From Camelus dromedarius (Eukaryota): a DNA stretch of 64,000 nucleotides. Shown here one piece after another: positions 2,460 through 51,668 of the stretch (positions are counted from its first letter, which is position 1; every line of letters begins with the position of its first letter). The notes under the pieces are model-generated. The model did not search any database and was not told where the DNA came from. It worked only from the letters and a program-made list of their open reading frames with translations. The translations under genes and the position numbers were made by a program. The stretch is from positions 1,364,001 to 1,428,000 of the forward strand of contig NC_087455.1 of NCBI RefSeq assembly GCF_036321535.1, written 5' to 3'.

Positions 2460-4872
2460 ATGACGGTCCTCCTTGCTTTGCTCCTGATCATGGGCATGCC
2501 GTGGGTGGAGACCAACATTACCGTGTCTGGAAGACAAAGTAAGTGCGCGGCCTTCGGCCTCCTGGGCTGGGAGGAGGAGGTGGGCTGGAATGCAGACACA
2601 GGGGTGGCCTCCATATCTGGATGCTGCCATGGCCCCACGTGGGTCTGGGCAATTGCAGAGCAGAGGACTCAGTGGGCATTAGGAGGGTGGCTGGCTGACT
2701 TGGACACCCAGTGTGGGGGGCCTCTGGATGTGGGCCCCCCAAGGGCGGGCAGGGATGGCTGGTTTATTCCCCAGCACCCAGCTTGCCCCACAATGGCCCT
2801 GCCTTCTTGGCAGAGGCCAAGCCTGACCCCACCCACGTGGGCCTTCTGGGGCTGTCTCTAAGAACAGGAAAGCTGCTGGAGTGTCACCTGCTTCTCCCCC
2901 GGGGAGCGAGTCCTGCCCCAGCGTAGACCCACCAGCGGGCTGCCGCTCTTGGGTCAGGGTGGACGCAAGGCCTCGGGGACGAGGAGTGGGGTGGGCCAGG
3001 AAGCAGGTGGAAAGGACACCTTTGGGAGCAGACTGCACAGCCCTGGAGTCCCTTTTTCTAGAGTACCTGGAGGGGAGATATGTCAGTGTTGTGTGTGGAC
3101 GTGGGGCGCAGTGTTCCCGTGCCAGGCTGTGAGTGTGTGTTTCTGGTGTGAGAGTGCAGGAATGTGTTGGTGCAGGGTGTCTGGGCGTGGGGGTGTGACC
3201 GAGACATGGCCTGTGTGTGGACTGGGGGAGGCCAGGAGAGGAGAGGAGCAGAGGAACTCAGGGGATGGGGCAGGCTGTGGGGAGCGGGGAGCTGGAGGGA
3301 CCCGCTGGCGGTGCTCGCTTGGAGGAAGAGAGGGCTGTTGTCCGTCTGAACGTACTAGAGGGCTGCAGGGTCCACTCTCCTTATGCTTCGATGCCCCGTT
3401 TCAGGACGGCTGAGGTGTCACGTGTGTGAGATAGAGAACAGTTTCGACTGCCAACAGCCAATGGACTGTGACCAGGGCGTTGAGTACTGCTCCACTGCTG
3501 CCGTGAGTGAGTATGAGCCCCGCCCCTGACGGGGCTCCCCAGGCAGCTCAGCAGAGCACTCAGGGCTTGGGGTCTGTCTGTGTCGTCAACAGAGAACAGC
3601 TGACATAAAAGTGAGCCTCTGTTTACACTGGAAGAACAGGGTCCTGTGAAGCCAGGCGTGCAGGCAGGGGCTGGAGGTGACCCCGCTGATGCGAGTGCCA
3701 GCAGAGCCCGAGTCCGGCCACAGCCCCGACCCCTGGCCAGCGCGCAGCAGCGACGGGCAGGGAGAAGTTGGTGGAGATTCCTTTTCATTCACTTCTGAGG
3801 GAAAAATTAAGCTTTACTGACTTCAGATGGCCGGAGGATAGCTTTACGAGAGATGTACATAATAAGGGGCGTGGGCTCCACATGTTCTGAAAAGAGTGGG
3901 CGCGCTTTAAAATGTCTGGAGACCGCCACTCTGTCATCTGTCATTCACCTGAGGATTCTGGCCTCATGAAGAACTCTCTCCCAAGCGGGTGTCTGAAGGC
4001 TCCGCCTGACCCAGCCGCGGCCTTGCTGGGGCCCGAGAAGCAAGCTCCCTCTGGGGGCTCCATGTCCCGGGAAGCGTGCGGGGTGCTGGGTTGGCTGAGG
4101 CGCCAGTCTCCCTGCAGCCTCACGTCACGTAACTCAGTATGGAGCCGCGATGGCCTGGGGACTCGTGCAACAGGGTGAAGTCCTGGGCCTGGCCCGGCTC
4201 CCAGCGCTGGGCCGTGGCCAGGATGGCCAGGAGTCCCTTGCTCCTGTGCAACTGTCTGTGGTCCCAAAGGCCTGAGCCACCCTCGTTTGAGAACTTGAGG
4301 CTTAAAGAGCCAGAGACCCTCAGGCCCAGGTTCCCGAGCCCGGAGACTGGCCAGGGCTGGGGTATCTGGTGCCACACTGCACGCCAGCCATCCCCCACTG
4401 CCCCCCAGAAGCAACTCTGAACGCAAAGGCTTGACTCTCCTCCCAACTCCTGGCCAGGTGCCCTCTTTGAGTGGGGCCTGAGAGTGCTCCCGGCAGGGGC
4501 AGGGCTGGACAGATTTTAGACGGAAACTGCTCATGTTGCCGCCTCCAACTCATGTGCTTCCTCTGTCTCTATTTCCCATCAGGAGTTTTTCCACGGTTCT
4601 TCTATGTTTCAAAGCAATGCATGAAGTACTGTGCGTTAAGCTTTCAGGGGATGCGGACAGCCAAGTCGTTTGTGCTCGTAAAGCCCACGCCCTTCCTGTT
4701 CATCTCGTGCTGCAGGGAGAACCTGTGCAACGTTGAGAAACCAGTCATCGAGGAAAACTCAGAAGATAAATACCGAGAGGTGGGAGGGGCCCCAGACGGG
4801 CAGGGCAGCAGCGCCAGGCTGGTGACTCTCGTGGCACTGGCCTCGGCGCTCCTGGGCCTCAGGCTGCCGTGA
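2460..4872 (+). CDS. LY6K: Lymphocyte antigen 6K, GPI-anchored LU protein, 156 aa; exons 2460-2538, 3405-3506, 4583-4872
   Basis: Spliced: MTVLLALLLIMGMPWVETNITVSGRQRRLRCHVCEIENSFDCQQPMDCDQGVEYCSTAAVRVFPRFFYVSKQCMKYCALSFQGMRTAKSFVLVKPTPFLFISCCRENLCNVEKPVIEENSEDKYREVGGAPDGQGSSARLVTLVALASALLGLRLP. 10 Cys, CC..LCN motif, hydrophobic tail. The FPRFF.V.KQC, C.....EN.F.C and P.PF motifs match human LY6K. Canonical donors (gtaagt, gtgagt); total 471 nt. Confidence 0.9.
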
Positions 4873-4912: not shown

Positions 4913-6849
4913 CTTGTTTTCCATGGATTAGCTCACCGGTGGTCTGACTTCCCAGGGACTTGGAAATGGGGTGAGCGGGCAGGGGGCTCTAGCCAACAGC
5001 TGGAATTAGAGCAAGTCCAAACCTTCCCCACAGTGATTTTGTTTACAAGTTTCTCTTTGAAACCCAGCCTTGTGACTGCTCATTGCTGACAGTCATTCTT
5101 GATTCTGCACGTTGGGGGGCCTCAGTATTGATGGAGGGGAGGGCCTGAGACCCTGCCCCGACTCCTGTGAAGAGCAGTGCTGACATTTCTACTCTTTGCC
5201 AGGAGTCAGAATAATATGGGCCTAAGACATCCCTGGAGTGAGATCCTCCTCGGTCTAGGGGATGGGACAGGACCTCGGGACGGCCCTCTGCGGCCAGCCA
5301 CGGGACCCATGGCTGCTCCCCCCTCAGCTCATGCCGCCAGATTCCAGGAGACAGAAAATGAGGAATTCTGCTGAATAAGCTTGGACTTCACCTGTCAACT
5401 GGCACAGGTACATAGACTCACAAACCCTTCTGTGGACATTTGTCCCACATCTGAGCCTGGTAGGCAGGTAGGCAGCAGCAGGCTCAGCCTTTATGCAGTC
5501 TCGTGGTGAGATGCAGCCCCCTAGACAGTGGAAAAGTCAGGCTGGAGGTTCTGCACAAGCCAGATGCTTTCTCCCTGCGGCGTGAGACCCAGCCCCATCT
5601 GCTGCTCACCTTCCCCCCCAGCTTCTGCCCGCATTCTGGCCACCCCTGACCCGGTCTGACTCAGAGACTGCTGCTGCCACCTGAGATCTTTGCAGACCAG
5701 GTCTCAGTGGCCCCAGGAGGAGGCACGGTGGGGCGGGCAGAGGGTGGTTTCTTTCTGTGCCATCCCTGAGGCAGGGAGGAGGTCCATCTTGGTCACATCC
5801 AGACACTCTAAACCAGAAACCTAAGTCTGTCCAGGGGGACGGCGGGCGGGAAGGGCCCCTGAGGGGTGACTGGCAGCTCCAGGCCTGGAGAAGTTTTCCA
5901 GCACCTACTAGGTTCCTACTGTGGGCCCACCCCTGTTCCAGGCACACGCTCTGTGCTCACACCCTGCTGCTCCTGCCTGTGCCCAGAACAGCGCCTGGGC
6001 CTGTCCTGACGCACATCCTGGGACTGGAGTTTGGGGAGCATCCCTTCTGTGAGGGCAGGCCAGAGAAGCAAAAGGTCAGCTACCTGAGTTCCCATAGCAA
6101 CCTGACACTGCAGTCTCTTCACAAGGAGGGTGGCTGTGTGGGGTGTGAAATAACTGGGAGGCTGAGACGTGTGAGTGTGGAGAATTCCTAACTTTGGATC
6201 TGGGGGGTCTCTGGTGATCTGCTGAGGAGCCCTTTCAGTGACTAGACAATGGGAAACATCAAATTATGGCAGGATGAGGAGACCAAGTGAACTGGGGCAC
6301 ATGTTGTCACCAGTATGACAGATACTCTTTCTAGAAAACTCACTGTGGAAAGAAGGAGACGGTAAGAGAGCGGTATTTAGAAAAAACAGATCAAGGGTCA
6401 ACGTCGGTGCCGCACTCTGAATGTAAAGACTTGGGAGCCTTTATCTGCTAAGAGTGGGAAGCACGAGTGAAGGATGGAAGCAGGAGGTGATGGCCCAGTG
6501 GGTGCAGTGAGGGCCCCGTGCAGGCAGGACAGCATAGGACCAGGGCAGCGGCCGCAGCCCCGACAGGGAGGATAGACACTTCCTCCTGCGACCCAGCACA
6601 GCTGTGGCCAGAAGCACACGGAAAGTTCATGTGTGGGAAGGAGCCAGGAAGCTGAAGGAAAAGACATGAATACTCAGGTCACGGAATCACCACAGACCTG
6701 GACTGAGACACCTGGAGTAAAATGTCCAGATTTCAAGCCAGGAGAAAATCCTAAAAGCTGCCAGAGAGAAAAGACATGTCTTCAAGGGAACAGCAGTTAC
6801 ACCCTGTGCAGACCTCTGTTCAACAGGAGGCAGAGGACCAGACAGTGAC

Positions 6850-8740
6850 AGCTCTGCAGCGTTAAACGACAGTAACTAGAAATTAGCCTGGATTTGAACA
6901 CTTAAATAAAGGCTTTTTCCGATAAGCAAAAAACTGGAATGGTTTACCTTTGACTAGTCACTGCTAAAGGAACTCCCCAAAAGCCTTCTTTAAGGGGAAT
7001 GAGAATAATCCCAGACACATGGAATGCAAGAAGGAATCACAAATTAAGAAAAAATGTCAGTATGTGGTGGTGTGGACTGCACCATGTCCCCCCAAATTCG
7101 TATGTTGCAGTCCTATTCCCCAGTGTGGAGCGAGGAAGTAATTACGGTTAAATGAGGTCAGTATGGTGGGGCCTTGATCCAAAAGAATGGCCTTTGAAGA
7201 CCAGACTCCAGAGAGCTCTCTCTGCTGCGGGAGGACACGGCAAGAGGCCCTCGCCAGAAAGTGGATCGGCCGGCACCTGGCCTTGGACTTGCAGCCTACA
7301 GAGCTGTGAGAGGTGAGTGTCTGCTGTTTACGTCACCTGGTCTGCGATGCTTTGTTGTAGCGGCCCGGGCTGACTGAGGCACGTGGGCAAATCAAAACAA
7401 ACACTGACTAGACAGCACAACAATAATAAATTCTTATTTGGGAGGTTAAAGAAAGTAAGAATACTGGATACAAACGGCATGAAAAGGCGGGAGGGACGTG
7501 ACTAACCACGAAGTGTTCTCCGGTTTCTCAGTGGCTCAGGTTAGAGACAGCAGAGGCATAAAGGGTCAATGCCAAGTGTCACAGAAATGGAGTTTTTACT
7601 GCCAGAGGTTCTGAAAAGAAGTGGATAGAAGAAAGTATAAGTACTAAATAACTGATGACAGCAATACCTTAGCATGCCTTGGTGCCCACAATAAATAAAA
7701 TCAGCGGCTCAAAGACAGTATCAGATTATTAGTGGATTATACTATTAATTTAAGGCAAAAGTCACTAACTGTGAAAGGCGTAAAAGACAAAATGACTCAC
7801 CAGAAAAAAATTTAACAACTTATGTGTATCTAACAGAAGTGCTTCGAAGTGTATAAAGTAAAAAGTGTTAGAACTACAAGGAGAAACGGACAAAACCAGC
7901 AACCTAGTGGAATATTTCAACACACCTCTCCCAACAGCTGACAGACCTGAAGGCAGAAGTTTAGTAAAAATACTGAACACCACAACTAACAGACCTTGTA
8001 CCCTGCACCCAACAGTGACAACATGGGCATTCTGCGCAAAAGCAAGACACCATAATGGAAATGTTCAAATCCTTTCAACTGAACAGTTAACAAAGTCTAC
8101 ACAGAAAACCAAACAGTATACAACAAAACATTGATACAAAGATGGAGCAGCCTCCAGGGGAAAACGGGGAAGCATTTTAACACTTAGGTTCTGAAAAGAG
8201 AAGAACGTGAGACAATTAAGGAATTAAACATGCCATTTCAAGACATAGGAGCTAATATTTTTCCAAAGCTAATTAAGGATATCACCCCACAGGTTTAAGA
8301 AACGCTAAAGAAACTAAAGCAGGATCAAGGAAACTCACACCTACGCACATCACAGTAAAACTGGAGAAACGCAGGAGAAAGAAAATCTTCAGAGCAGCCA
8401 GAGAAAATAGCCCAACACTTCAGGGGCAACGTGGAGACAAATAACCGGGTTCGAAGAGAGACAATAAGCAATGAAAAGCCGGAGACAGTGGAAGGGCATC
8501 GTCAAACCTCTGGCAGACAGTAACTATTAACCTAGAACTTTATACAAAGCAAAAATAGCCTTCAAAATTCAAAGCTAACAACAAACTTAAAATCTCGAAG
8601 AATGTATCACCAGCGGACCACACCAAAAGAAATACAAGGGGCAGGAGAAAAATGATCTCAAGCATGAGCAAAGAAATGCAGAGGAAAAATAGGAAAGGAA
8701 AAAAAGAGCAAAGGCGAGTCAATAAACACAAGTATCACTG
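6850..8740 (+). mobile_element. Old L1 (L1M) fragments, ORF1/inter-ORF/early ORF2 region, nested
   Basis: A-rich sense-strand L1-like text (e.g. tagaactttatacaaagcaaaaatagccttcaaaattc, gtggaatatttcaacacacctctc); ORF 7865-8134 resembles the L1 endonuclease region (VEYFNTPLPTADR). Confidence 0.7.
7063..7381 (+). mobile_element. MaLR LTR (MLT1A-like) inserted in L1
   Basis: tgtggtgg...tgtcccccaaattcgtatgttg...aattacggttaaatgaggtca...ccttggacttgcagcct...ctgtgaga...ctgtttacgtcacctggtctgcgatgctttgttgtagcggcccgggctgactgaggca: typical MLT1 landmarks. Confidence 0.8.
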
Positions 8741-9260
8741 TGTGAAACAGTATCAGGGAGGCCCGGGCTGGGCCACGTAAAGCTCTGAGTAGCACAGGTA
8801 ACGCGAGGGCACGGACAGCGAGGAGTCGCCGGCGGCAGCCGTGGCGCGGCCCGCGGCGATAAAGGAGCCTGCGCCCCGGGAGGCGAAACACGGGGGTGGA
8901 CGAGCATCGCTAGTTCCGGAAAACCTTTACTTACGGACGAGGAAACCTGCATTTCGTGTAGCTGTCGCAGAAGACGCCCGCCCCGCGCCACGTGACTACA
9001 GAAGGCTGCTCTCTCTCGGCTCTCGGGCGCCAGGAGAACAGGCGCCGCGCGGGCCTCGGGCTGCCCGTCGGGGAGCGCAGACCCCCCCCCCCCCCGCGGA
9101 GGGGCGCCTGTGGGGGGCGCGCGACGAAGCAGGCGTCCCCGCCGGGAAGCCCGCAGCCTGCTTCGCTGTCCGGCGGCGGAACTGCGCCCCAGGCGCCGCG
9201 AAACGGCAGGGAGAATGCCCCACCTCCAGGCCTGTCCCAGTTCTGACTTTAGCCGAGGTT
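8740..9260. promoter_or_regulatory. CpG island embedded between L1 segments
   Basis: ~500 bp very CpG-dense block with E-box gccacgtgac (~8987), ETS-like ttccggaa (~8913) and a poly-C run; AT-rich L1 on both sides. Confidence 0.55.
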
Positions 9261-16670: not shown

Positions 16671-17863
16671 TGTTCAGGCAGCATCCATCCCATCTCAGTT
16701 CACAGAGTTGCACCAATTTGAGAGGAAGTGATCAGAGCTCTGGTTTCTTCCCCACCCTTAGCTCTGAGGGGCTGGGGCAAATGGGAGCCCACATACCATA
16801 TGGCCAAAAATACGAAAATTCTAAAAGAAGCTTTAAAAAAGTTAAAATAAAATATCATTGACAAATATACCATCTAAATAAACTGGACAGTTCGTTGTGA
16901 CTTTAAGTCCCAGGCTCCTTGGCTGCACAGAGAGACCCTGGCCCCAGCCCAGGACCTGCCCCCCACCCGGCACGGCAAGGCCCCAGCGAGTGTGCAGGTG
17001 GCTCCCAGCCTGTGCACCAGCTCCACCTCCGCCCCTCCCAGCAACCACCCAGAGCCACCTGCGCCCCCAGCGCCTGAGTCCATCCTTTGTGGGCGGATGC
17101 AGAGAGACCCCACAGGGGCCCTGGGAAAGAACCCAGCAGATACCTCTAGGGCACAGGCCAGGCCCGGACGGGGAGGGCCCGAGGCATGAGAGTCCGCCCT
17201 GGAGGCCGACGGGGAGGCCAGCTTACTCAGAGAGTGGGCGCGATGGGACTCTCAGCAGACTGTGGCCCAGTCAGAGTTGCACCCAGAGGGTGGCTGTGGT
17301 CCTTGGGAAGGGGACTGTAGCCGCGAGGAGAGAGAGCCGCTGTGGCCCTGGGAGGGGATGAGTGGAGACACCAGGAGATAGGAGCACCCACCCCTCGGCC
17401 TCTGGAATCCCAGGCAGACCCCGATACACGAACTGGAAGCAGCCCACTGAGCCGGCTGTTTCCTGCACCTGCCCCCACCCCCCAGGGCGCCCTTATCACC
17501 CATGGTCCTCTAAGCCTGGCCTGAAGGCCTGATGGACAGCAATTCAGCTCCGACTGGGACAGTGGGGTGCGCCTCTGGCTCCATCCGGCCCCGTCGGTTG
17601 GCCCCACAGCCCAGCAGAACCAGCACCCCAGGAGCTCACTCGGAACGCAGAGTCTCAGGTCTCACCTGGGTCTCCAAGTCAGAAGCAGCATTCTACTGGA
17701 GCCCCAGGTGATGTATGTGCACACCACAGGTTGAGCCACACTGGTCCAAAGCCAGTTTTCAGCCTGTGGTGCCTCAGTTTGGGGCCTCCCTGTCTGCCTG
17801 GCCCAAGGGAGAGGCACAGGGGAGGCGGCCGCTGAGAGCGCTCAGGAGGCCTGTGTCCCCCCA

Positions 17864-18003
17864 GACCCCAGGGCAGAGCCGTGACCCCCGGACCAGACCC
17901 CAGGGCAGAGCCGTGACCCCCGGACCAGACCCCAGGGCAGAGCCGTGACCCCCGGACCAGACCCCAGGGCAGAGCCGTGACCCCCGGACCAGACCCCAGG
18001 GCA
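17864..18003 (+). repeat. 32-bp perfect minisatellite, 4.4 copies (gaccccagggcagagccgtgacccccggacca)
   Basis: Unit starts at 17864, 17896, 17928, 17960 and 17992. Confidence 0.95.
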
Positions 18004-18145: not shown

Positions 18146-18151
18146 TATAAA
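18146..18151 (+). promoter_or_regulatory. TATA box of the Ly6g6g-like locus
   Basis: gcaTATAAAgg, 54 nt upstream of the ATT that occupies the start-codon position; the same spacing (49-55 nt) is seen in LY6D, SLURP2 and SLURP1. Confidence 0.75.
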
Positions 18152-18199
18152 GGCACCTGGGACCGGCTGCCCCCAGCTCCAGCTGGCGGGTGCCCCACG

Positions 18200-21100
18200 A
18201 TTAGGCCACTCCTGGTGTTTCTGCTTCTGGCCGCTCTGTGCACTGTCCTGGGTAAGGGACGCTGACCTAGGTGGGAGGGACAAGGACAGACAGGTGCCAG
18301 GCAGGACTGGCTCCAGTCTCAGGGTCTGCGGCAGCAGTCTGGGTGGGGGCTGCAGGGTTAGGGTTAGGGAGTGAGGGGGACCCCTTGTGGCTGCTCCCTG
18401 ACCAGCCAGACGCAGAGAGGTTTGGTGTCCCTTTGGGCATAGTTTCTGGCAGATCTACCTCTTACGGGTGAAAGGCCCTGGGGAGAGGTCCAAGGCTGCC
18501 ACACTCAGGCCGGCAGCGGGACGCGGGTTCCCGCCAGGGTGGTCAGTTGTCCTGTTTCCTGGGACAAAGGGGATTTCTGGGAGGTGGGACTCTCGGTGCT
18601 AAACCAGAAAAAGGAAATGGTCACCCCCATCTCCAGCCCCAGCTCTGCCCCTACCTGATGACCTGGCTTTATGACCTTGAACAAGAGCACCTGCTGCTTT
18701 GGGGTCACCGGGGAGTGGGTGAGGCAACCTGTGATTATCAGCTGGACGATCATCACGCAGGGATAATTAGCCCCATCCGCTCCCTCTGGGCGTGGGGTTG
18801 GCGTGGGGAAGGGTGGCGCCAACTCTCCGGGGAAGCCCTCGGGGTGCGAGGTGGAGGGGAAGGGGGCCTGCAGCTGGGAGGAGGCGCCTTGGGGATCAGT
18901 CTCAGACTGGGGAGGCTGGAAAGACAGATGGAGGGGACGCTCGGGCAAGGGTGTGAGGCCGGCCGCGTGGACTGGGCAGTTGGCAAATTCACTTCTCAAA
19001 AGAGAGCTGGGTGCAGAGGTGAGGCCTGGGACTCCTGCTGCAGACTCCCTGTCCACCGGCCTGGGGTGGGGTGCACCAGCAGGCCCCAGGCATGGAGGGC
19101 CAGAGCCTTTCCCTCCTGGTAATAAACAGCCCTTAGCACCTACTGTGTGCAGAATCCTCAGAGCCTCAGTCCTCCAGCCCAGGCCACAGTCCTGGGCCTG
19201 GAGCCCCCGTGAAGGCAGGAGGGGCAGGAGCCCCATGCTTCGTGCGAGCGTGGGATCATCCACCCTCTTCCGGCAAGGCCGAGCAGTCCACTGCCATTAG
19301 CCTCATCTTGTAGGTGAGGACACTGTGGCCCAGAGAGGGACAGGGACAGTGAAAAGTAGGACCCAGATCGCCTCTGAAGTCGACCCTCCTCTGTCCCCAG
19401 GGGGCCACCTACACCCTCCCTCCCGCTGCCAGACCAGCACCCACACACACAGGGCCCGCGGGGAGCGTCAGTCACAGCTGCCAATCCCGAGCCCCTCAGC
19501 CTGTCCCAGGGGACCAGGAGCACCTGAGTGCGAGGGAGGGAGAGGAGGCGCTCAGCCTAGCCCCTCCCAGGCCCCCAGGCCCCCCAGCCTGATGGCTGCC
19601 CCAGCCCCAGCCCAAGCTGACTGCGGCCCTGTGCCTCCTCTCCCCCAGTCCGGGCCCTGCGCGGCCACGTGTGCTGTGGCCAGTGCTCCCCGACCGACAG
19701 GTTCTGTGTGATCACGCGGGCCACTGAGTACCCGCGCTGGCCCCGCCGCCGGCCCGGTCTGGCCAGCCAGCAGCCCCCTGCCCCACCCAGGTCCAGACCC
19801 TTAAGGACAGCACACCCTCCAGTAGGAACCCGGCAGTGGGGCCCAGCCTGGGCGGTGGGTGGCAGGGACTACCGTTCGTCCTTTTCTGTGCTACTCACAT
19901 GTCCACTGTGAGGGTCAGTTAAGAGAAGCTCCTGCAGCCACCCAGCAAAGCTGTCACAGCGGGGCCGACGTGGGCTTCCCAGTTCAAGTTTGAAGGGGTC
20001 CATGTGAAATATTTGGGAGGGAGGGAGCAGGTGGTACTCAGATTTGGACACAGGCAGAGGGATGCCTGAAGGCCTGGCCTGCGTCACAGCCCCACAAGGC
20101 AGCAGGGCAGCCTAGCTGGCGGTGTGCCTCTCCGGGGCTCCAGCCTCACCTCCCGCTGTGCTGGACCTTTTGCCCACCTTTCCCCGCCACACCTGGAACT
20201 GCCGTCTCCAGGTTCCCCGGGCTGCCAGCCTCCACCACACCCCCAAAACAGGCCCAATCCTTCTTCCAACCTCCCAGGACCCCCTCTTCAGGCCTGAGCC
20301 GCTGCACTGGGGCCCCGGCTCTTGAGTGAGGGCTGATGGTGACAGTGACAGGCAGGGTCAGGGTGTGGGCGGGGCCCCAGGAGGGCAGGGTCAGGGGTGC
20401 AGGGGGTGGTCCTGGAGCAGCCAGTGCAGGGACAAGGGCCCTCTGGCAGGTTCGGGGCTGGGCGATGGCAGGTGCTCGTAGATGATCTTGGCACCACCCA
20501 AAGTGCCTCCCCGAGCTGTGGCTTTCTCATCTGGCTGTGGGGATGGTAGTGGGGGTGGTGAACGCTGGCTGGCTCCCTTGGGCAACACTGGGGAGACGGG
20601 GTGGTCTCTGGGCCTTGGCTTCTGTGGATCCGATGGTGAGGGGGAGTCTGAGACCACGGTCCCTTGGAGGTCCTCACAGCAAACAGCCAGGCCCTGCTGG
20701 ACACTGTGCCCAGTGTATCAGTCCATCTTCTCATTCAGTCCTCCAACAGCCCCAGCCAAATATCCCAATTCTCATGCCAGGAAGCTGGAGCTTGGAGATC
20801 CCAGCAAGGATGTGGCCATGCTGGGCAGTGTCACCAGCACCTGCTACATCTCCTTAGCAGTAACTCAGAAATGGGTTAGATATGGTTCCCAAACCGAACT
20901 CATGTCCACTCACCTGCGTGCAGCAAAGCCAATCTACTGACACCGGCTTGTGGTGAAGGAACGTGCAGCATTTATTTACAGCGCGTCAAGCAGGGAGAAT
21001 GGACAGCTCGTGCTCAAAAGCTCCGAACTCCCCAATGGCTTTCAGGGAGGATGAGGGCCTCAGGGTGGGTGATGAGCTCGTGGATGTTTCTGATTGGTTG

Positions 21101-22699
21101 GTGGTGAGGTAACAGGGGGATTTTCTAGAATTGTGACCTTCTGGTTCCAGCCAGTCTGGGGTCGAGTGCTTATGGTCGGCATATAGTCGTCACCCTTCAC
21201 TGGGTGGGGTTCTTAGTTTCTGCAGAACAACTTGAAGGTATGTGTCAGACTGTTACCTGTGTCCCTTCAGGAGGAACCAGGAGCCATGTGACTCTTGTCC
21301 TAATTGTCCTGCTTGAGTCTGCCCTTTGGAACTCAGGGAAGCCAGCGAAGAAGCAGGGGCATGGAGAGGCTTGTGCCTGGCAGGGCCTGGCAGGGCCCCG
21401 CAGGGTCCTGCTGGTTCCACCAGAATCGCCCCTGTTACACTCTACCCACGGCAACACAACTCCTTATGTAGATTACTGAGCAGAGCAGCAACAAATGACC
21501 GTATCGCTGCCGGGTGAGAGGTAGAGACATGGCCCTGTCCGGTGTCCCGCCTGGCACTGCCCCAGGGGGTATGTCCCCAGAGGTGGCCTCCCAGGGGGAG
21601 ACTGCTGCCCACCCTAGAGAGTTAGCCTTTGCTCGAGGCCCTGCAGTTGGTTGCAATGGCCTCTGGTCAAGGAACAGCCTTGATCCACTGGGAGCTGGTG
21701 GCTCTGTCTCTCTGCTTGGCCAAGGCCTAAGAGGGCCATGTCCTTCTTGGCCCTGGTGGCTCTGATGCCCCGCTCCCTAAACACTGCTCCTAACTATGCT
21801 GTCTAAAAGCGGACGTTTATGCAGCCCGCTCTCAGCGCTACTCATGACTGAACCCACTTAGCCCCCAAGCAATTGCAGAAGTTGGTCCTCTTTTTATCCA
21901 CATTCTCCAGACGAGGAAATTGAAGCACCTGAGGATGACCCTCCAGCCCTCTCTGATTTCTGGGCCAGCTGCAAATAGGAGTCCCTTTGTCAGGGTCACA
22001 GTTTCAAGCACGTTCTGAGTAGGAAGGGTTAAGGGGAGCAAGGCATGCTGAGCCAGCACTCCTGGGCTCTGAGCCGCCTGCACTGTTGTCTCAGGAGCCT
22101 GGCTCAGCCGCCCCAGTGTCCACAGAGGAGGCCGTCCTGCCCAAGAGCCCTGCTCACCCTGAGGGGCTGCTGTCAGCCCCGCCTCCCTCTCCCAGCCCCT
22201 TCCCTTCCCTTCCGGATGTGAAGCTCAAAAGGCAACTGAGGCCGCCCTGGGCCTTTTAATCCTCTAGCCACCACTTCCTCAGGCTTTTCAGTCCCAGAAA
22301 GGGACCGGGGCGAGCAGGGCCTGGCATTTCCTCTGGGCCCTGAAACCCAGAGCGGAGAAGAGCTCCCACACATCTGCCAGAGAGAAGGGGAAGAGGGGCT
22401 GGGCGTGGGGCCTCACCATCCCAAGGGCTGGCTGGCTGGGTGGCCACAGAGCACGCCGCCCATGGGCACTCGCCCCTCTCTCTACAGCCAATCCCGGCGG
22501 CATCCTGGTCATGAAGTCCTGTGCCCCGACGTGCCCCAACAGCACTGTGTCCTCCGATGGCCGGGCGCTGTCCGTCTACTGCTGTCAGGGCAGCCAGTGC
22601 AACCGTAGCGCGGCCATGGGCCTGACGGGCAGCCACGGGGCCCTGTGGATCAGCGCCTTGGCCAGCCTGTTGTGGGTGCTGCTCCAGGCTGCCTGGTGA
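18200..22699 (+). pseudogene. Ly6/uPAR-family gene with disabling lesions, probable Ly6g6g (mouse D730001G18Rik) orthologue; exons 18200-18251, 19649-19723, 22488-22699
   Basis: Conceptual splice: (I)RPLLVFLLLAALCTVL-VRALRGHVCCGQCSPTDRFCVITRA-TNPGGILVMKSCAPTCPNSTVSSDGRALSVYCCQGSQCNRSAAMGLTGSHGALWISALASLLWVLLQAAW*. Start is ATT; LRCHVC is LRGHVC; exon 2 is 75 nt versus 99-120 nt in neighbours; donor reads ctgagt. Exon 3 has 5 Cys and a GPI tail. Position between LY6K and LY6D matches recalled mouse gene order. Confidence 0.8.
20883..21419 (-). mobile_element. ERV1-class solo LTR in intron 2 of the Ly6 pseudogene
   Basis: tggttcccaaaccgaact...gcagcaaagccaatctactgacaccggcttgtggtgaaggaa...catttattt...ctgattggttgg...agggccccgcagggtcctgctggttcca; TG..CA ends, reverse poly(A)-like and CCAAT motifs. 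Confidence 0.7.
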
Positions 22700-23488
22700 G
22701 CCCACCTGCTACAGACCGGCCCTGGGTCTTGCCTGACCCCTCTCAACCTGGACGCAGCTGCCCAGGGTCCGTCTCCAGCCTGCGCTTCCCCCAGCCCCCG
22801 CACACCCCCACCTCCCTGCCATTCCTCCCCACCTCCCCCCGGGCCGCACCAACCCCTCAGGAGGGAAGCTCTCCTCCTGCCTCGGGGAACCCACTGATGA
22901 GGGAAGAGCTGCAGCCCCTTCCGAGGGTGGGAAGTGCCTCAGTTCTCCCCAGCACCCTCCACCCTGCTCCAGGGCCTTGCTCTGGGGGTTCCTCTCCCTC
23001 AGACTCTGCCTCAGAGGACCCCCTGAGCTCCGTGGCCATAGGGCCCGTCCGCTGCCTTCTGTGGCCAGAGCTGCCTGAGCTGGGGCGGCAAGTCCGAGGG
23101 CCGGGCTTTCAAACCGCCCACCAGCTACTCCCGTGTTCACGCATATTCGTTCACCCTCCCTTGGCCCACCCACGCTTCCTGTCCGCGGGTCAGCTGGTGA
23201 GTTCATTCATCGCAGACCTCCCCCCACAACCCGAGGCTTCCCTGGAGCTGGGCACCCAGGGGAGAGCCAGCAGGACCCGCCTCCCAGGGCTCTCATTCTG
23301 GGGCTCCGTGTGCAGAAGTCCAGGGAGGGGATGGGGCTTCTGGAAGGCCACGGGCAGCCCTGCCAGCTCCGGCCAGGTGAAGACGGGCCTTTTCATTGTT
23401 CCCCCGGCCGCCCACTGTGGGATGGGCCACAGAAATGTGGGCGTCCTTCCCCCCAGGGGCAGCCCCCTCCAGGATGTGTAGAGAGGAC

Positions 23489-23494
23489 AATAAA
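23489..23494 (+). terminator. Candidate poly(A) signal of the Ly6g6g-like locus
   Basis: AATAAA, the first I found downstream of the stop at 22699 (~790 nt). Confidence 0.5.
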
Positions 23495-24594
23495 GCTTCA
23501 GAGCTGCTCCGAGCTCATTCTCGGCGCTGGCGAGCCCGCAGGGCGTTTTCTCGTCCTCGAGCTTGGGAACCTCCTGGGCCTTGGAGGTGGGCGGGGGCCC
23601 TTTATGGGTTGGGGGTCCTTGCCGCGCGCGCTCAGGCAGGGGAGCAGCCCTTCCCTCGCTCTCTAAGAAGCCGCGTCTGTGCCGAACGCCCTTGGCCTGC
23701 ATGGCCGAGACGCGCTTTCGGCAAATCTCAAGTTGCAGGTTGACGTGGCATTCCCTGGGGAGCCCTCCTGAGCCTCAGCGACCCCCAGCATAGATGGTCA
23801 GCTCTGTGTGATCCTCCCTCTGCTGTCCTACACCCCTTGCCCGGGCGCACCAGGCTCCCAGGGCTCTGAGTCTCCTCCCAGGGCCAAAAGTCCCCACGGC
23901 TCCAGAATTTTGCTCCCCTGCACCTCTGCCCAGGGCCTTTCCTCAGGAAGCCCCCTACCTGCCCTGAAGGGAGGAAGGCCCTTCCTGTTTCCCACAGCCA
24001 CGTCTCTGGACCCCTGCAGCGGGGGTGGCCAGCCACCGCTGGTCTCCTGTGCCTGTGACAGGGCTGTCCTGGCCATTCCATGGGGGAGTGGGCTCCGGAG
24101 ACATGCAGGGAAGCAGAGGAACCACTGTCCTGGCGGAGCCTGCCCTCTTGTGGGGCTTCTGTCCGCTGTTTGCACCTTGGACCGTTTGGAGGACAAGACG
24201 GGCTGAGAGTGCCCTGCCTGGAGACAGAATGTGGGGGTTCCCTCAGGGCCGCTCTGAGCCTCCAGCACAGTCTGCCTGCACAGCCACCGGGGGGCCCAGG
24301 AAGAGGCTGTCTGGGGATGCACGGGGCGGCCATCCAGCGGCAGAGTTGGGGCTCAGGCTGGGGCCACCCCACCCAGCCTTAGAAACTTGGGATTTCTTTT
24401 CTTAAGAAAAGTGGTAATTTCCTTTCTTCACTCTCCTGTCTGACGAACCTCCCCTCTGGGGCAGGCCCCACCCCTATAAGCCCCAACGGAAAATCACCCA
24501 GATATCCCATGATGACACAGGGCCACCTCCACCAGGAGCGGCTGCACCCAGAAGTTGGGGCGGGGCAAGGAGGCTGTCTCCAGATACAAGTCTC

Positions 24595-26580: not shown

Positions 26581-29500
26581 TGGACAGGTGTTGGGAGCAA
26601 GTGAGGGCAGAGGAGCGAGGGAGGAAAGTGAAAAGAGCCTGTGCTCACCGCCCCAGAGCCTACGCCTGCGCTGCCACGGAAGGGCACAGCTTGTACCCTG
26701 AGGGCTTCATCACCGGCTCCCCAGGCCGCTGTCTCTTGGGGACACGGCCAGAGAAGCTGGCAGTCGGCGCCCATGCAGGGCCCTGTGGAGTGGTGCCCAG
26801 TGCTGGTCCTAGGTGCCGGTGTAGCCGGGGCCCTGTAGGGCCTCTCGCAGGGCAGTTTGTCTCTCTTGGCCCTCGGAAACCTAGGGCTCCAGTCTGGCCA
26901 TTCCCAGGAACAGGCTGCGCCCCGAGGCAGGGAAGGGCTGCCTATGTGGCTCCTCCTTGGATTTGCCATTTAGCAGAGCAGGAGAGAGGAGCCCCGCAGG
27001 TAGGAGAGGCCAGCGTAGCGGTGCAGAGCCAGCCTTGAACTCCAGCCTCTAGCCCAGGCCAGGGACACCAACTGTGTCCAGAAGCCCCACCAGCGGCCAA
27101 GGTCCCAGGGGCTGATCTAGGATAGGTGGGGGCCACATCAGGCCCTGGGATGCAGGTGAGAGACCCATGTCGAGGCCTGGGGCTCTGGGTGTGAAGGTGG
27201 CTCTCACGCGTCAGGAGGGAGCAGAGGGGAGGCCTGGGTGTGTGGGAAGCGCCCCAGGCGGGGGGCCAGGCCCAGCTCTGGCTCCCACTAGCTGGCTGGG
27301 TGTCCCTGGGGAGGCCCTGCCCTCTCTGTGTCAGGGAGGGAGGCCCCACACCTGTGTGTGACTAAAAGGGACAGAACAGGCCCGAGGGAGACACTGCATC
27401 CCTCGGCTGCCTGACTCACAGGGCAGTCACCTCACCCCAGGTGGGGAAGAAGGGAGACACGGGAAAGGAGTAGGGCCCTCAGGGCCAGGCAGGGCCTCTG
27501 ACCCAGGCCCTGGCTGCTGTGGCCGGAGGCCCTGCCCTGCTCCACCCTGGGAGCGCTCCCCCAGGCCCCTCGGCCCACGCAGGGTTCACATCGTGTCATG
27601 TGTCCATCCCCATCTCCCTAGTCAGGGGCCCTGAGGGTGGGCTGGACCGCGTCTCTCAGTCTCCATCACACCCTCTGTGCCTGACACATGTGGGTCCTTC
27701 TCAGACGCTGCTGGTGGAACGAGGGAGCGGTGAGCGGGTGCCGGAGGCGGGGGGCACACTCCGGCGCTCGGGCTGCAGCCTGGGCCAGCGCTGCCCCTAT
27801 GGTGACCTGAGGCCGCAGAGGCCGGGCCCGGCCCAAGGCTGGGGTGCCTGACCCGGGCCTGACTTGCCCGCCCTGGTGCCCACCCTCAGTCCAGGGCAGG
27901 GCCTTCCCAGGGCTGCACTTTCTGAAGGCCTGGGGTGGCCGCTGTGCTGGCACTTCCCTCTCTGGGCCATGCTCCCGCTTCGCGTAACCCTGGTGGTCCT
28001 GACAGCTGGGAGGTCTGGGCCTCACTTCTGCCTCCACACACCCTGGGCTTAGAGCAGGGGGAGAGGGCTGGAGGAGGGGAGGGGGCCTGGGCAGGAGAAC
28101 CTGGGCTGCAGGCAAGGGCCTGGGCTTGTCCCGCGCCTGGCTCCCTGGCCAGCCGAGTTCAGGAGGCAGGCAGGGTTTGGGGGGCAGGGGTGGTGGTATT
28201 CTCAGCCCCGCACCCCTTCAAGTCCTCTCCTGGGCGTCACGCCTGCTGGTACAGTCAGGCCTGGGGACCTCGGGCTGGGACCTAGGGACCTCGAGCTGGC
28301 TGGGAGGGCTCAGTTTCCAGAAAGCAGGAGCTCTCCTCAGCCTGCGAAGGAGGAGGGAAGGAGGGGCCGGCAGTGATAGAAAGTCCCAGGTTCTGCCCAC
28401 TCCCGGGGTGACCACTCCCGGCCCCCACTGGCCCCCACTTTCTCACTAATAACAGGTGTTGGAAGGGGACCAACTTCAGGGCTCCTCTCTCCATAAAGGC
28501 TCCTCTCTCCCCTGAATCCTGCCTCTAAGACCGTGGCCAGGTCACTGCCTGCAGGAAGCCTTCTCAGACTGCACTCTCCTGATAACCTGCAGTTCTCTGA
28601 AAGCTCCTGCCACTGGCACCACCCACTTTCTTCCACAAGTAAATTGTGTTTGGGGTTGATGCCTCTGCTAGGAAGCCCCCAGGAGAGGCAGCTCACGTCC
28701 TGGTGGGCAGCCCTGCCAGGGGCAAAGGCCTCCTTCCCACGAAACAGAACCCAGCTGCCACCTCTGCTCTGGTGTCTAGCTCTGCTTCCAGGGCACACAG
28801 CCACCATAAAGCCTGAAGTGCCCCATGGAGGTGGACCAGGGGTACAGGGGCCTCGTCCAGCCCCATGAGTGGGGAGCCCACTGCCCCGGGGCCTCACACC
28901 AGACCACTGCTCCCAGTTGGCCTGACACCTGTGGGTCCTGTGGCTCCACTGGGCCGAAAACAAATCCAATCCCCCAAACCTGTTTTTCCAGCAGCTTCAG
29001 CTTCCATGCTCCTTAGCCCAAGTGAGTCACCCCTCCCCACCTGGCATCCCCTGCCCTCTTCCAGTCACCACTCTGTCACGGAGCCCTGCGTGCTGCTTCC
29101 CAAGGCCTCACGGGCACCTCCCCGTCACCTGCCAAGGAGACTTGTGCCAGAAGAATGTGGGGAGGCCTCGGAGCTCAGGGTGACTCTCTCCGTGGATGAG
29201 GGCCCGGGGACCCCCACATTACCTGCCTTATCAATCTAGACCCCAGCTGCCCTAAACGAACCCCAGGGAGCCTGGGACTAGCCAGCCAGGTAGGTGGCCT
29301 CGCCGGGCTTGGAAGGCTGCTGTGGGGCTCCTCAGGGACTCCCGCCTGTCCCCCTCACTCTGCCCCCCAGGGTCCCAGAAGGCACCTCAGCTCCACCTTC
29401 CACCTTTGGGCAGGTCCCACTGGTCCAGTAAGCATCAAGGAGGGCAGCACCTCCTGGGACCCCCAGTGCCACGAGGTGGCCCTGACCTGACTCCATGCGG

Positions 29501-30900: not shown

Positions 30901-32254
30901 ATGAAGACAGCGCTGCTGTTTCTTGTTGCCTTGGCTGTGGCTGCTGGTCCAGGTGAGGGGCTGGGCGGGGGCTGGGTGGGCCAGACCCTGGAAGCCTGGA
31001 GTGTTCACCTCTAGGCTGGGAGAACCCTGGCATTGTGAGGGCTGGAAAAAAGTGAACCCTGCATCTTGACTTAGAGGGGTCACAGACTTACAATATTTCA
31101 GGATCAGTGAATCTTAGAATCAACCCAGAGAATCTGATGTCTGAGTTGTCTTGAGATGCCTCTCCCAGGGGAAAGACAGATACCTGGGACCCAGTCCCTG
31201 ACCCTTCCAGGCCCCAGGGCCCTCCCAGGCCAGCCCTTCCTCCCGCAGGCTCAGCGTGGCCAAGCTGACAGCTCCCAGGGCCCCAGCTCAGCCTCAGCTC
31301 CTCACCATGGGTGGCCTGTCCAGAGACTGCCCTTGGGGTGGGGACAGCAGCCAGGTCCTGCAAGCAGAAGTGCCCGAGCTCTCTGACCGCCCTGGAGAAG
31401 GGCCTCCAGCACAGCCCATGGCAGCCGCCTCCTCACTGTTCCTCCAGAAACGCCCGGCACCGGACACCTCCTCTAGGTGGGGCCCCAGCTCCAGCAGACA
31501 GGGGCTGTCACCTCCCGCTGCCTGAGGCTGTGTGCAAGACATGAGCTCTGGAAGAGCCCAGGGGCCTCAGAGGGGACTGGCCTAGGGCAAGGGTGGCAGA
31601 GGGCTCTGTCCAGGAGGGGCCTTTTCAGGCAGTGGACCCAGGTCTCCCTGTCTCCCTGGGAGGCCTCCCTGGGGCCCGTTGAAACCCTGACACCCTCACC
31701 CTCAGCCCAGGCTCTCCGCTGCCACGTGTGCTCCAGCTCCTCCAACTGTAAGAAACCTCAGACCTGCCCAGCCAGCGCGAACTTCTGCAGGACCATGACC
31801 AACGGTGAGTGACTGGGGGGAAGGGAGACGGGCCCCTGCAGGACACCCTAGACCTCTGTCCAGGTGTCCCAGGGGGCCATCCCTGGGGAGATCGGTGAGA
31901 GATCTCGGCGATGGTTCAGTCAAGGTGGCGAAGGAAGTTGGGAGCTGGGACTTGCGGGGCGGGGCTGGGAGGGGCTGGGGTGGAGGCGGTGCCTGTCCTG
32001 ACCACGCCCACCCGCTCTCAGTGGAGACTCTGTCTGGGAACCTGGTGGAGAAGGACTGCGTGGAGTCCTGCACGCCCACGAACAGCATGCAGGGCCAGGT
32101 CAGCAGCGGCACGGCGGCCACCCTGTGCTGCCGAGGCGACCTGTGCAACGATAATCTGCAGAGCGCCGCGCCTGCCCGCGCCCTGCTCACCAGCGCCACC
32201 CTCGGCCTGGCGCTGGCCCTTTTCCTCCTCATCATCTCGGCCCCCAGCCTGTGA
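30901..32254 (+). CDS. LY6D: Lymphocyte antigen 6D (E48), GPI-anchored, 127 aa; exons 30901-30952, 31706-31804, 32022-32254
   Basis: MKTALLFLVALAVAAGPAQALRCHVCSSSSNCKKPQTCPASANFCRTMTNVETLSGNLVEKDCVESCTPTNSMQGQVSSGTAATLCCRGDLCNDNLQSAAPARALLTSATLGLALALFLLIISAPSL; closely matches human LY6D (GNLVKKDC, GQVSSG, APSL end); canonical splice sites. Confidence 0.97.
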
Positions 32255-42854: not shown

Positions 42855-43617
42855 ATGGCACCCCTGCTCACCCTGCTCCTGGTGGCCCTGGCTGGCCTGC
42901 CTCTGGGTAAGATGGATGGAAGACGAGGAGTGGACCAACCCCCTTTGGGGGCAGGCAGGCTGCAAGTGGGGAGGGAGGCCAGAATGCCTGGGGGCCACCT
43001 CTCCTTCCAGCTGTTCTGCTCTGGGGAGGGTGATGGAACCAAGGGGCTGATGGGCTAGAGGCAGGGCCTCTCCCTGTTCTGTGACCCCATCCCCTGGCCC
43101 CAAGCCCAGGCTCTGGACTGCCACGTGTGCGCCTACAATGGAGAGAACTGCTTCAACCCCACGCGCTGCCCGGCCATGGTCACCTACTGTATGACCACAC
43201 GCACTTGTGAGTCAGTGGGGTGCTCTGCACAGCCCTCCCTGGGGAGCATAGGGGCCTGCTTCTCCTGCCCTGCGAAGTGTGGGGGAGGCTGAGGAGGGAG
43301 GCTCCCATCTGCCCCAGGATCCCCTGGGAGCCCCCGGCTGAGGGGAACCTGGCCTAATGGCCCTGCGAGCTGGGGTTGGCCCCTCTCAGGGTCCTGACCT
43401 TCCCCTCTACCCCTCTGAAGACTACACCCCGACTAGGATGAAGGTGAGCAAGTCATGTGTGACCAGCTGCTTTGAAACCGTGTACGATGGCTACTCCAAG
43501 CACGCATCCACCACGGCCTGCTGCCAGTACGACCTCTGTAACGGCGCCAGCCTCGCTGCCCCCATGACCCTGGCCCTGGCTCTTATTCTCCTGGCCACCT
43601 TCTGGGGTCTGCTCTGA
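42855..43617 (+). CDS. LYNX1: Ly6/neurotoxin 1, GPI-anchored nAChR modulator, 116 aa; exons 42855-42906, 43105-43206, 43421-43617
   Basis: [116 protein letters not shown]; near-identical to human LYNX1. Confidence 0.98.
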
Positions 43618-48857: not shown

Positions 48858-51668
48858 ATGAGGCTGCTCCTTGGGCTCCTGTTGGCAGCTGCCTTGAGCC
48901 TGGAGCTAGGTAAGTCGGGGTGGGGGTGGGGGGGCGGGACCACTTTCCTTCCAGATGTCTTACTGGGCTGTGACTCCCACCTTGGGGGAGCCCACTTCCT
49001 GTCCCCTCCCCCCTCTCCTGGGGCACCAGACTTCCCCCTCCACCAGCCCCTCCGCCTGTGACACCAGGCACTTCCTGGACCTGCAGGGAAGTCATCTGAG
49101 CCTCACACTGTCCTTGTCCCTGCAAGGGCTGCCCACTTCTCAGGGCTCTGCCCTCCCCCCACTACCTCCACAGGCCTCCCCACTCCAGCAGTGACCCCCC
49201 ACACCTGAGTTTGAAGGCCTGCCCTGTTTCCTGGGTCCTCCCTCTCCTGGCTCCCTCCTACCTCCCCTGTAGGTGGGATCCTGGCCTCTCCCCTCTCCAC
49301 TCCAGGCTTCCTTATAGGGGCAGCTTCCCCACTGCCATCACTTCAGTCTTCCCTGGCTATGCCCACATCCGTGGATGCTGGCTGCATCTGACCCAGCTTC
49401 CAGCCCTTCGCTCAGAGGTTGGCCTGAGGGCATCCTCCCAGATGTCCGAATAGAGCCAGCAGGGCTCCCCTGATCCAACCCCCACCAGACCCTGCTCTCC
49501 CAGCCCTCACCTGTTTCCCCTTCTGGGTCAGCACTCCCTCACCAGCCACATGGCCCTAAATGAGATGGACAGAGGAAACGTCTGGACGTCCCTGGCCCAG
49601 GCACAGCGCTCCCCCTCCCAGTCTCTGGGATCTGTCCACTGTCTCTACCCGCAGGGACCCTCCTAGGGGCCTCTGACTGTGGGAAAGGGGCCAGGCCTCA
49701 CCACTGACCCCTGAGAACTGCCCCTAGGTCATCAGGGTGGATGTACAAGGAGGGGATGCCTGCAGGAGTCTGAGCTCAAGGCAGGGAAAGCCCTGGTCAC
49801 CACCAGGGCTGGGTCACAAGGACTGGGTGGCCTCCTCTCCGTCCCTGGGCTCAGCCCAGTTCCAGGGGATCACAGAAGCCTGCCAGGTGCTATGTCCACG
49901 GAAACATCACTGACCAGAGACCCTGCCCTGCCTGAGCAGCTGGCCTCTGAAGTCCCATCTGCTCTCACACACAGCAGGCCTCAGGCTGGGGTCACTGCCT
50001 TTCCAGTTGGAGAATGGGGGGTCAGAGCCCTGTGGCCCTCTTTCAGGGACCCCATAAGCCTCATCGTTGCTGGTGTCCTCTCCCTGTCACCCAGGGGCAG
50101 CACAGCCTTCCCTGGGCCTCACACTGGCCCAGGCTTAGTTAACCAAGCAGCACCCAGAGTGGGAGGTGAGCTGCCTGCGCGGGGCAGGACAGGAGCCTGG
50201 TCTGCTGCCCCCAAAGCCACCGCCTCTGTCCATCCTCCGTCCTCCGTCCTTCCGTCTCTCCCTCCCTCCCTCCCTTCCTTCCACTAAGCTCCCCTGAGCC
50301 CTGCTAGGCACAGAGGAGGGGTGCATTGTGGTGGATGGTCTGGGGGCACCTTCACATCTGGGGCAGTGGGGGTGGGGAGGGAACCCTGAGACCAGGTCAC
50401 GTGGGAGCAAGGACAAATCGCCAGCACCTCACAGTGGGCAGGTCAAAGGGGCAACATCAACTCTGCCCTAGAAGCCCAGGAGGCCTTCTTAGAAGAGGCG
50501 GCATCTGAGCCGGGGCCCGTTTCACCTGGAAGGGCAGGACAGCAGAGGCAAAGCAGGGAGGCATCTGGGAGGGTGAGCAGGGAGGAAGGGAGGCAGGAAC
50601 TGGTTATCTCACTGGGACACCCCTGGGGCACAGATATCTCAGTTTTTCCGGTGACACCACCCTGCCCGTCCATGAGGGTCCCTGCCATCTGCCACCCCAA
50701 TCGGCACTGCCAGAGTCTGCGAAGTGCTTACGCAGCTTATCAAAGCACCATCGGGTTTGACGTGAGGGTGGCTTCAGTCATCTTTTTGGGGCCTTGTGAC
50801 ATCTGCTGCCCACATCGGTGGGGGGCGGGGGATGGGACACCGACCAGCCGACTCCAGCCGCAGCGCTGACCCCAGCAGGGCGGTGGCCCGTTACACCCTG
50901 AGCGTGATCACTTGTATCCTGCAATGACCAGTCCCACAGGGTAACAGAGCAGAGGGCCCTGGGCTGAGGCTTGGTACCTGGTGACCTTCTCCCCAGCCCT
51001 CTGTCTTGGAGGTCTTGAGGGGTGAGGCACCCCAAGATGAAGGACAGGGGCCCCCGAGAATGGGAATTGGTGCTGGGTGAGAAGAAAGAGTGCCATCATG
51101 CGGGAGGTACCCCCACCTGCGTCCCTGTCTGTGTGTCCGTCCATCCTTCCCTCTGCCTGCAACTGTAGCCCAGGCCTTGCAGTGCCACCAGTGCAAGGGC
51201 TTCGGAGGATGCGCCCAGAAGTCCAAATGCCCATCCAGGTCCAGCCACTGCATCAGTATCGCCACCCGTGAGTAGGGGATGAGGAGCAGGCCGGCCACGC
51301 CCTCCTCAGTGAGTGGGGAGACCCGGGCTCAGAGGGGGTGGAGACTGAGCCAGCTGCTGGGCAAGTCAGTCCCAGGGCAGGGAAAGCCTCACCCAGCAGC
51401 TAAAGCGGGAGGCCGGGTCCACCCGGGGTGGAGGAGGGAGCTGACCCACGTCTCGGTGGTAGGTGGGGCAGTGGGTACGGGCAGCTCAGATCCTTGGGTT
51501 GTCTGCAGGATTTCTCTCCTGTCCACCCCAGGGGCCCCCAGCAACTTCCCGGACCTGCCTCTTGTCACCAAGATGTGCTACAGAGGCTGCCCTGACATCA
51601 ACACCCTGGGCCTGGGCCCCTACGTGTCCATCGTCTGCTGCCAGGCCAGCCTCTGCAACCGTGACTGA
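48858..51668 (+). CDS. SLURP2: Secreted Ly6/uPAR-related protein 2, 95 aa; exons 48858-48909, 51169-51267, 51532-51668
   Basis: [95 protein letters not shown]; matches human SLURP2 ([35 protein letters not shown]); no GPI tail. Confidence 0.95.

Follow-up and report, generated by a model that had tools for sequence, protein, structure and literature searches.

Structure of the camel LY6G6G locus

The region considered here is a 64,000-nucleotide stretch of the dromedary genome (Camelus dromedarius; NCBI RefSeq assembly GCF_036321535.1, contig NC_087455.1, positions 1,364,001 to 1,428,000 of the forward strand; hereafter the window), in which a member of the Ly6 family, LY6G6G, retains its promoter and its first and third exons together with a degraded second exon and a start-codon position that does not read ATG. 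To place these features, each exon and its flanks were aligned across the window and the corresponding locus DNA of seven other mammals, namely Camelus ferus, reindeer, white rhinoceros, a Hipposideros bat, cat, rat and black bear. All parts of the gene lie on the + strand. The TATA box (TATAAA) occupies 18146-18151, and the motif CATATAAAGGCACC that contains it is near-identical in all eight aligned sequences. Exon 1 (52 nt, 18200-18251) translates as IRPLLVFLLLAALCTVL, a signal peptide that is typical except for its first codon; it begins ATT-AGG-CCA, with ATT at the start-codon position (18200-18202) where the seven other sequences have ATG, and is followed by the conserved donor G/GTAAGG (the slash marking the exon border). 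Behind a CAG acceptor lies the exon-2 relic (75 nt, 19649-19723, against 99 nt in orthologues), which alignment to the orthologues shows to end at a destroyed splice donor, CT in place of GT (19724-19725), with a weak in-frame cryptic donor GT further on at 19757-19758. Exon 3 (22488-22699) is open to its TGA stop (22697-22699) and translates as the C-terminal half of the LU domain; the 3' untranslated region then runs from 22700 to 23494, ending in AATAAA (23489-23494).

Within exon 3, the C-terminal CC-x(4-5)-CN motif of the LU domain is retained as CC-x5-CN, alongside five cysteines and two N-x-S/T sites. On its own, this exon scores 27.6 bits against Pfam PF00087 (snake-toxin-like; cut-off 21.2) and 24.8 bits against PF00021 (uPAR/Ly6; cut-off 24.8). 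Judged by eye, a hydrophobic stretch closes the tail after CNRSAA and is a candidate glycosylphosphatidylinositol (GPI) signal; the entry for GPI anchoring of mouse Ly6g6g in the 2016 family review is 'predicted no' (PMC4839075). A preliminary reading made from the letters alone (the sequence-only reading) had described an intact TATA box, a 52-nt first exon starting with ATT, and an exon 3 and AATAAA signal free of frameshifts and stops, and each of these features was recovered on re-inspection and translation, as was the hydrophobic tail.

Orthology and conservation

Because sequence matches and gene position agree, the camel locus is identified by both as the orthologue of mouse Ly6g6g (D730001G18Rik), the gene that the sequence-only reading had named as the counterpart at this place. 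A protein search with exon 3 as query against 5.8 billion clustered proteins returned 55 matches, three of them camel models. E-values against the orthologues ranged from 1e-38 to 1e-16 in this word-based search, which rules out chance, and an exhaustive profile search with the same exon brought no gain over it. The non-camel matches are proteins of about 120 amino acids (aa) from bats, rodents, carnivores, primates, afrotherians, marsupials and the platypus; identity over exon 3 is 77-88% in most placental matches and 60-73% in ruminants, platypus and marsupials. Proteins from Apodemus, Phodopus, Jaculus and Nannospalax bear the name Ly6g6g, and mammalian orthologues have otherwise often been automatically named 'lymphocyte antigen 6E-like', 'SLURP2-like' or 'LYPD2-like'. 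Camel exon 3 is closer to this LY6G6G group than to other Ly6 paralogues, and the LY6D paralogue of the same locus is about 38% identical to the bat LY6G6G orthologue.

Position and structure point the same way. The genes LY6K-like, LY6G6G and LY6D follow one another on one strand, in agreement with mouse, where Ly6g6g sits between Ly6d and Ly6k and is described as a three-exon gene with one LU domain and unknown function (PMC4839075). Base-for-base alignment with bat, cat, rat and bear extends over the TATA box, start position, exon-1 donor and the acceptors of exons 2 and 3. The camel copy thus shares with mouse Ly6g6g and its mammalian orthologues the TATA promoter, the three exons, the 1-1 phase and the Ly6k-Ly6d position. 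It differs in what it encodes: the orthologues specify about 120 aa with eleven cysteines, whereas the camel copy is without Cys1, the Cys3 segment and the exon-2 donor, and the ATG kept in the orthologues is absent from it in this genome.

The intact protein is strongly conserved. Pairwise identity among orthologues, from marsupials and platypus to placentals, is 59-93%, and an alignment of 21 intact orthologues shows little or no variation across nearly the whole mature domain. The closest protein of solved structure is LYNX1 (2L03), a paralogue encoded by a separate gene, all ten cysteines of which align with an intact orthologue (E = 2.5e-6); ancestral LY6G6G was therefore a standard three-finger LU domain. 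Unlike LYNX1, LY6G6G has an additional conserved cysteine in the motif HVCC, and this eleventh, unpaired-looking residue is kept from marsupials and platypus to placentals (P0005-P0053). LY6G6G ranks among the best-conserved Ly6 genes; the main family review nevertheless records it for mouse and gives no human counterpart (PMC4839075).

Lesions in exon 2 and at the start codon

At 75 nt, camel exon 2 falls 24 nt short of the 99 nt found in bat, cat, rat and bear, the missing piece having stood between 19681 and 19682. The deleted segment carries the cysteine that aligns with Cys3 of LYNX1 in the 2L03 alignment, and in none of the 21 intact orthologues aligned is there a gap across it. In addition, Cys1, which is a cysteine in 21 of 21 intact orthologues, has become glycine in camel (GGC at 19663-19665), and the donor reads GCCA/CTGAGTA where bat, cat, rat and bear have GCCA/GTGAGTA and reindeer has GCCG/GTGAGTA. 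Further private camel changes in this exon are A>V at 19649, H>R at 19661, A>S at 19687 and K>R at 19700. The sequence-only reading had named the TGC>GGC change in the first LU cysteine and the GT>CT change at 19724, and had supposed an in-frame deletion of the third-cysteine segment; all three are borne out by comparison with the orthologues. The camel copy is consequently short of the full ten-cysteine LU set, to which Cys1 and Cys3 belong. In the standard Ly6 disulfide scheme, C1 pairs with C5 and C2 with C3 (CD59, LYNX1), and by that scheme the loss of Cys1 and Cys3 deprives two disulfides of a partner.

A second camel sequence, the 152-aa protein model P0002, shows the same exon-2 lesions. 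This model has methionine where the window has isoleucine and must on that account derive from another sequence; it carries the same glycine and the same deletion, reads through the CT donor to the in-frame GT at 19757, and continues ...VITRATEYPRWPRRRPA before exon 3, matching window 19723-19756. Since P0002 shares the glycine, the deletion and the read-through, the exon-2 lesions are not errors of the present assembly. In C. ferus, exon 2 lies inside an assembly gap. Gene conversion was considered as a source of the exon-2 changes and rejected, as no donor for it turned up in the window, where the matches of 9-14 nt were at chance level and a similar-looking stretch at 26665 proved not to be a Ly6 exon.

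The start codon tells a different story. Identity between the window and C. ferus is about 99%, and the TATA motif and start position are common to all eight aligned sequences. ATT occurs in the window only, against ATG in 7 of 7 other mammals including C. ferus. The camel protein models P0001 and P0002 both start with methionine as well, and ATT is therefore private to this genome. A look-up of the 50-aa open reading frame that runs across the ATT codon returned no record. Provided that it is real, ATT would be the youngest lesion, postdating the split from the Bactrian lineage.

Selection pattern and independent decay in other mammals

Private changes, defined as those at sites where the other compared lineages agree or all but one do, were counted in exon 2 and in the 126 nt of exon 3 that encode part of the domain. 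The ratio of nonsynonymous to synonymous changes in exon 2 is 5:0 in camel, compared with 1:2 in bat, 0:2 in cat, 0:5 in rat and 1:1 in bear. In the exon 3 domain it is 1:4 in camel, 0:2 in bat, 2:2 in cat, 0:4 in rat and 0:2 in bear, and 9:0 and 5:2 in reindeer and rhinoceros, respectively. The sole nonsynonymous camel change in the exon 3 domain is S>Y at 22577-22579. The within-camel contrast (5:0 versus 1:4) gives p of about 0.05 in a Fisher's exact test calculated by hand on ten events, and such a difference in substitution type between two exons of one gene is suggestive. Exon 2 probably died first, losing constraint well ahead of exon 3, for which either a late loss or constraint that persists today would fit.

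Camels are not alone in the decay of exon 2. In reindeer, the exon has independently lost 27 nt in frame, a deletion that takes away the second and third cysteines and leaves the donor intact (decayed exon at 8234-8340 of reindeer locus L002), and this copy is also without the terminal CN motif. White rhinoceros carries two 2-nt deletions in the exon together with several substitutions and a donor changed from GT to GG (8657-8793 of locus L003). Both species resemble camel in that exon 2 is hit and exons 1 and 3 are still open, and they differ from it in the lesions themselves and in the relaxed state of exon 3 described above. The sequence-only reading had proposed a lineage-specific and fairly recent loss. 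The first part does not hold, given the separate breakage of exon 2 in reindeer and white rhinoceros. The second holds for ATT, private to this genome, and not for exon 2, whose decay is probably not recent because its lesions are common to the second camel sequence and its private changes stand at 5:0. A further observation concerns P0051, from a contig of the European Nucleotide Archive (ENA), in which an open reading frame of LY6G6G exon 3 has had its CC and CN motifs destroyed (RC, RN); its sequence points to a more advanced LY6G6G pseudogene in a further mammal.

Gene models and transcription

The locus had been described from sequence as unannotated-looking, which proved incorrect: NCBI has modelled for Camelus bactrianus an 87-aa 'lymphocyte antigen 6E-like' protein that skips exon 2, and a mis-built gene model lies over exon 3 in C. 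ferus. No 120-aa camel protein was found among the 5.8 billion clustered proteins. Exon-2-skipped models of 87 aa also exist in Cebus, where exon 2 is intact with good splice sites, and in Phodopus, for which an 87-aa and a 120-aa model of the same gene are both present. Skipping preserves the reading frame because the ancestral exon is 99 nt long in phase 1-1, and the exon-2-skipped form seems, from these models, to be a commonly predicted natural isoform. An interpretation of the 87-aa models as signs of exon-2 loss in other species was rejected, exon 2 of Cebus being fully intact.

RNA-seq contigs from reproductive-tract samples of one study contain 48-77% of the sampled words of 22488-23510, and metatranscriptomes carrying a second organism label, from another study, contain 40-47% of them. 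In two reproductive-tract runs, 24-39% of the whole 4.5-kb stretch, introns included, was recovered, and unspliced RNA or DNA carry-over is possible there. The camel LY6G6G locus is thus probably transcribed. Published clues for the mouse gene are confined to wounded skin, where it is co-upregulated with hair-follicle genes, and to a listing in a colon expression table.

A probable pseudogene in the making and the competing explanations

Camel LY6G6G is probably best regarded as a unitary pseudogene in the making, held at an intermediate state. Bat, cat, rat, bear and 17 further species retain an intact orthologue. No second copy was seen in the window, which contains a single locus, and the protein collection yielded no 120-aa camel protein. 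The evidence obtained by sequence comparison comprises the orthology, the lesions relative to the orthologues, and the exon-2 lesions in a second camel sequence. Under this interpretation, the locus is a TATA-driven three-exon gene whose product starts with a signal peptide, contains one LU domain and ends in a GPI-type tail. The exon for the N-terminal half of the domain is dead in Camelus through the change of Cys1 to glycine, the deletion of Cys3 and the CT donor, and the canonical ten-cysteine LU domain can no longer be made. A spliced camel mRNA has to skip exon 2, giving the 87-aa product modelled in Bactrian camel, retain the intron or use the weak cryptic donor. The change of ATG to ATT in this genome further takes away the sole start codon ahead of the signal peptide. 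Apart from that codon, exons 1 and 3 are still whole, as are the promoter and the poly(A) signal. We infer that exon 2 was lost first and the start codon last, that exon 2 is skipped, and that function has been lost.

Several observations weigh against this interpretation. None of the three camel exons contains a stop codon or frameshift, and relaxed selection does not extend over the whole coding sequence, since exon 2 is relaxed and the exon 3 domain is not. The 1:4 ratio of camel exon 3 resembles intact lineages rather than the decayed copies of reindeer (9:0) and rhinoceros (5:2), a pattern that argues for late loss or ongoing constraint. The presence of the 3' exon in RNA contigs indicates that the locus is not silent, exon-2-skipped models are found in C. 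bactrianus as well as in Cebus and Phodopus, and ATT is known from this assembly alone, one base away from C. ferus. A rival explanation is that the gene is alive, exon 2 having been shed long ago in favour of a functional 87-aa product made up of the signal peptide, the C-terminal half of the LU domain and the GPI tail, a form that would be a natural isoform in other mammals. ATT would then reflect a fault in the assembly, a rare allele or a private loss of very recent date. Besides the exon 3 pattern, the RNA contigs and the C. bactrianus model just mentioned, such a gene would fit the contrast between the two camel exons (p of about 0.05) and the conservation of the promoter, the context of the ATG, the exon-1 donor, the exon-3 acceptor and the poly(A) signal, and the skipped form is modelled even where the DNA of exon 2 is intact (Cebus) or a 120-aa model encodes it (Phodopus). 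We nevertheless consider this explanation unlikely. The substitution counts behind it are very small, the 87-aa product would have five cysteines, one of them without a partner, and there is no ATG ahead of the signal peptide in this genome. The 87-aa isoform models are predictions, and the relaxation of exon 3 in reindeer and rhinoceros after exon-2 decay argues that the short product is not generally protected. The narrower proposition that in camels purifying selection continued to act on the last exon well after the death of exon 2, the 87-aa product having a function apart from the three-finger fold, is in our view quite improbable; were the short-product explanation true, ATT would represent a very recent final loss, or an error. 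It is very improbable that the lesions are sequencing or assembly errors, or misplaced exons, in a gene that is intact in this animal: such an account has in its favour that ATT differs from C. ferus by one base and is confined to this assembly, but the exon-2 lesions recur in P0002, which comes from a different sequence, the exon borders fall on AG and GT sites conserved in six other mammals, and the window offers no alternative exon 2.

The description of the gene as caught in pseudogenisation thus stands in part: the three-finger domain is lost and the start codon reads ATT, but a product without exon 2 may keep a function, as the 1:4 ratio of exon 3 allows. Regarded as a pseudogene in the making, camel LY6G6G would be the clearest natural knock-out of the gene and, with the independent decay in reindeer and rhinoceros, may help to frame the role of the protein. 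The combination of a dead exon 2 and a clean exon 3 raises the question of whether the common exon-2-skipped isoform does anything. For camel biology, this would be one more ordinary gene loss, and its value lies in providing a natural knock-out of a highly conserved, unstudied Ly6 gene.

Neighbouring Ly6 genes and further observations

In a six-frame scan, the + strand of the window showed seven last exons of LU type. In addition to LY6G6G, these are the LY6K-like last exon at 4471-4872, which is 44% identical to that portion of a Tupaia model which corresponds to LY6K and has a possible first exon near 2460-2537; LY6D exon 3 near 32000; and the last exons of LYNX1 near 43400, SLURP2 near 51500, LYPD2 near 58000 and SLURP1 near 62500. 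The LY6K-like last exon adjoins CYP11B upstream of LY6G6G, an arrangement that fits the mouse order (Ly6d, Ly6g6g, Ly6k). Human LY6K, by contrast, lies beside PSCA, unlike the camel and mouse order. Some database models join LY6G6G exons to a neighbouring Ly6 gene, as in P0014 (Onychomys), P0055 (Tupaia) and P0012 (Neotoma); the fusion partners are an upstream Ly6 exon 2, LY6K or LY6D, and at this tightly packed locus such models reflect either read-through transcription or faulty annotation. A perfect 32-bp minisatellite of 4.5 copies (17861-18003) stands about 150 bp ahead of the TATA box of LY6G6G; the same minisatellite spans about 500 bp in C. ferus (5897-6394 of locus L001), so its copy number differs between camel species.

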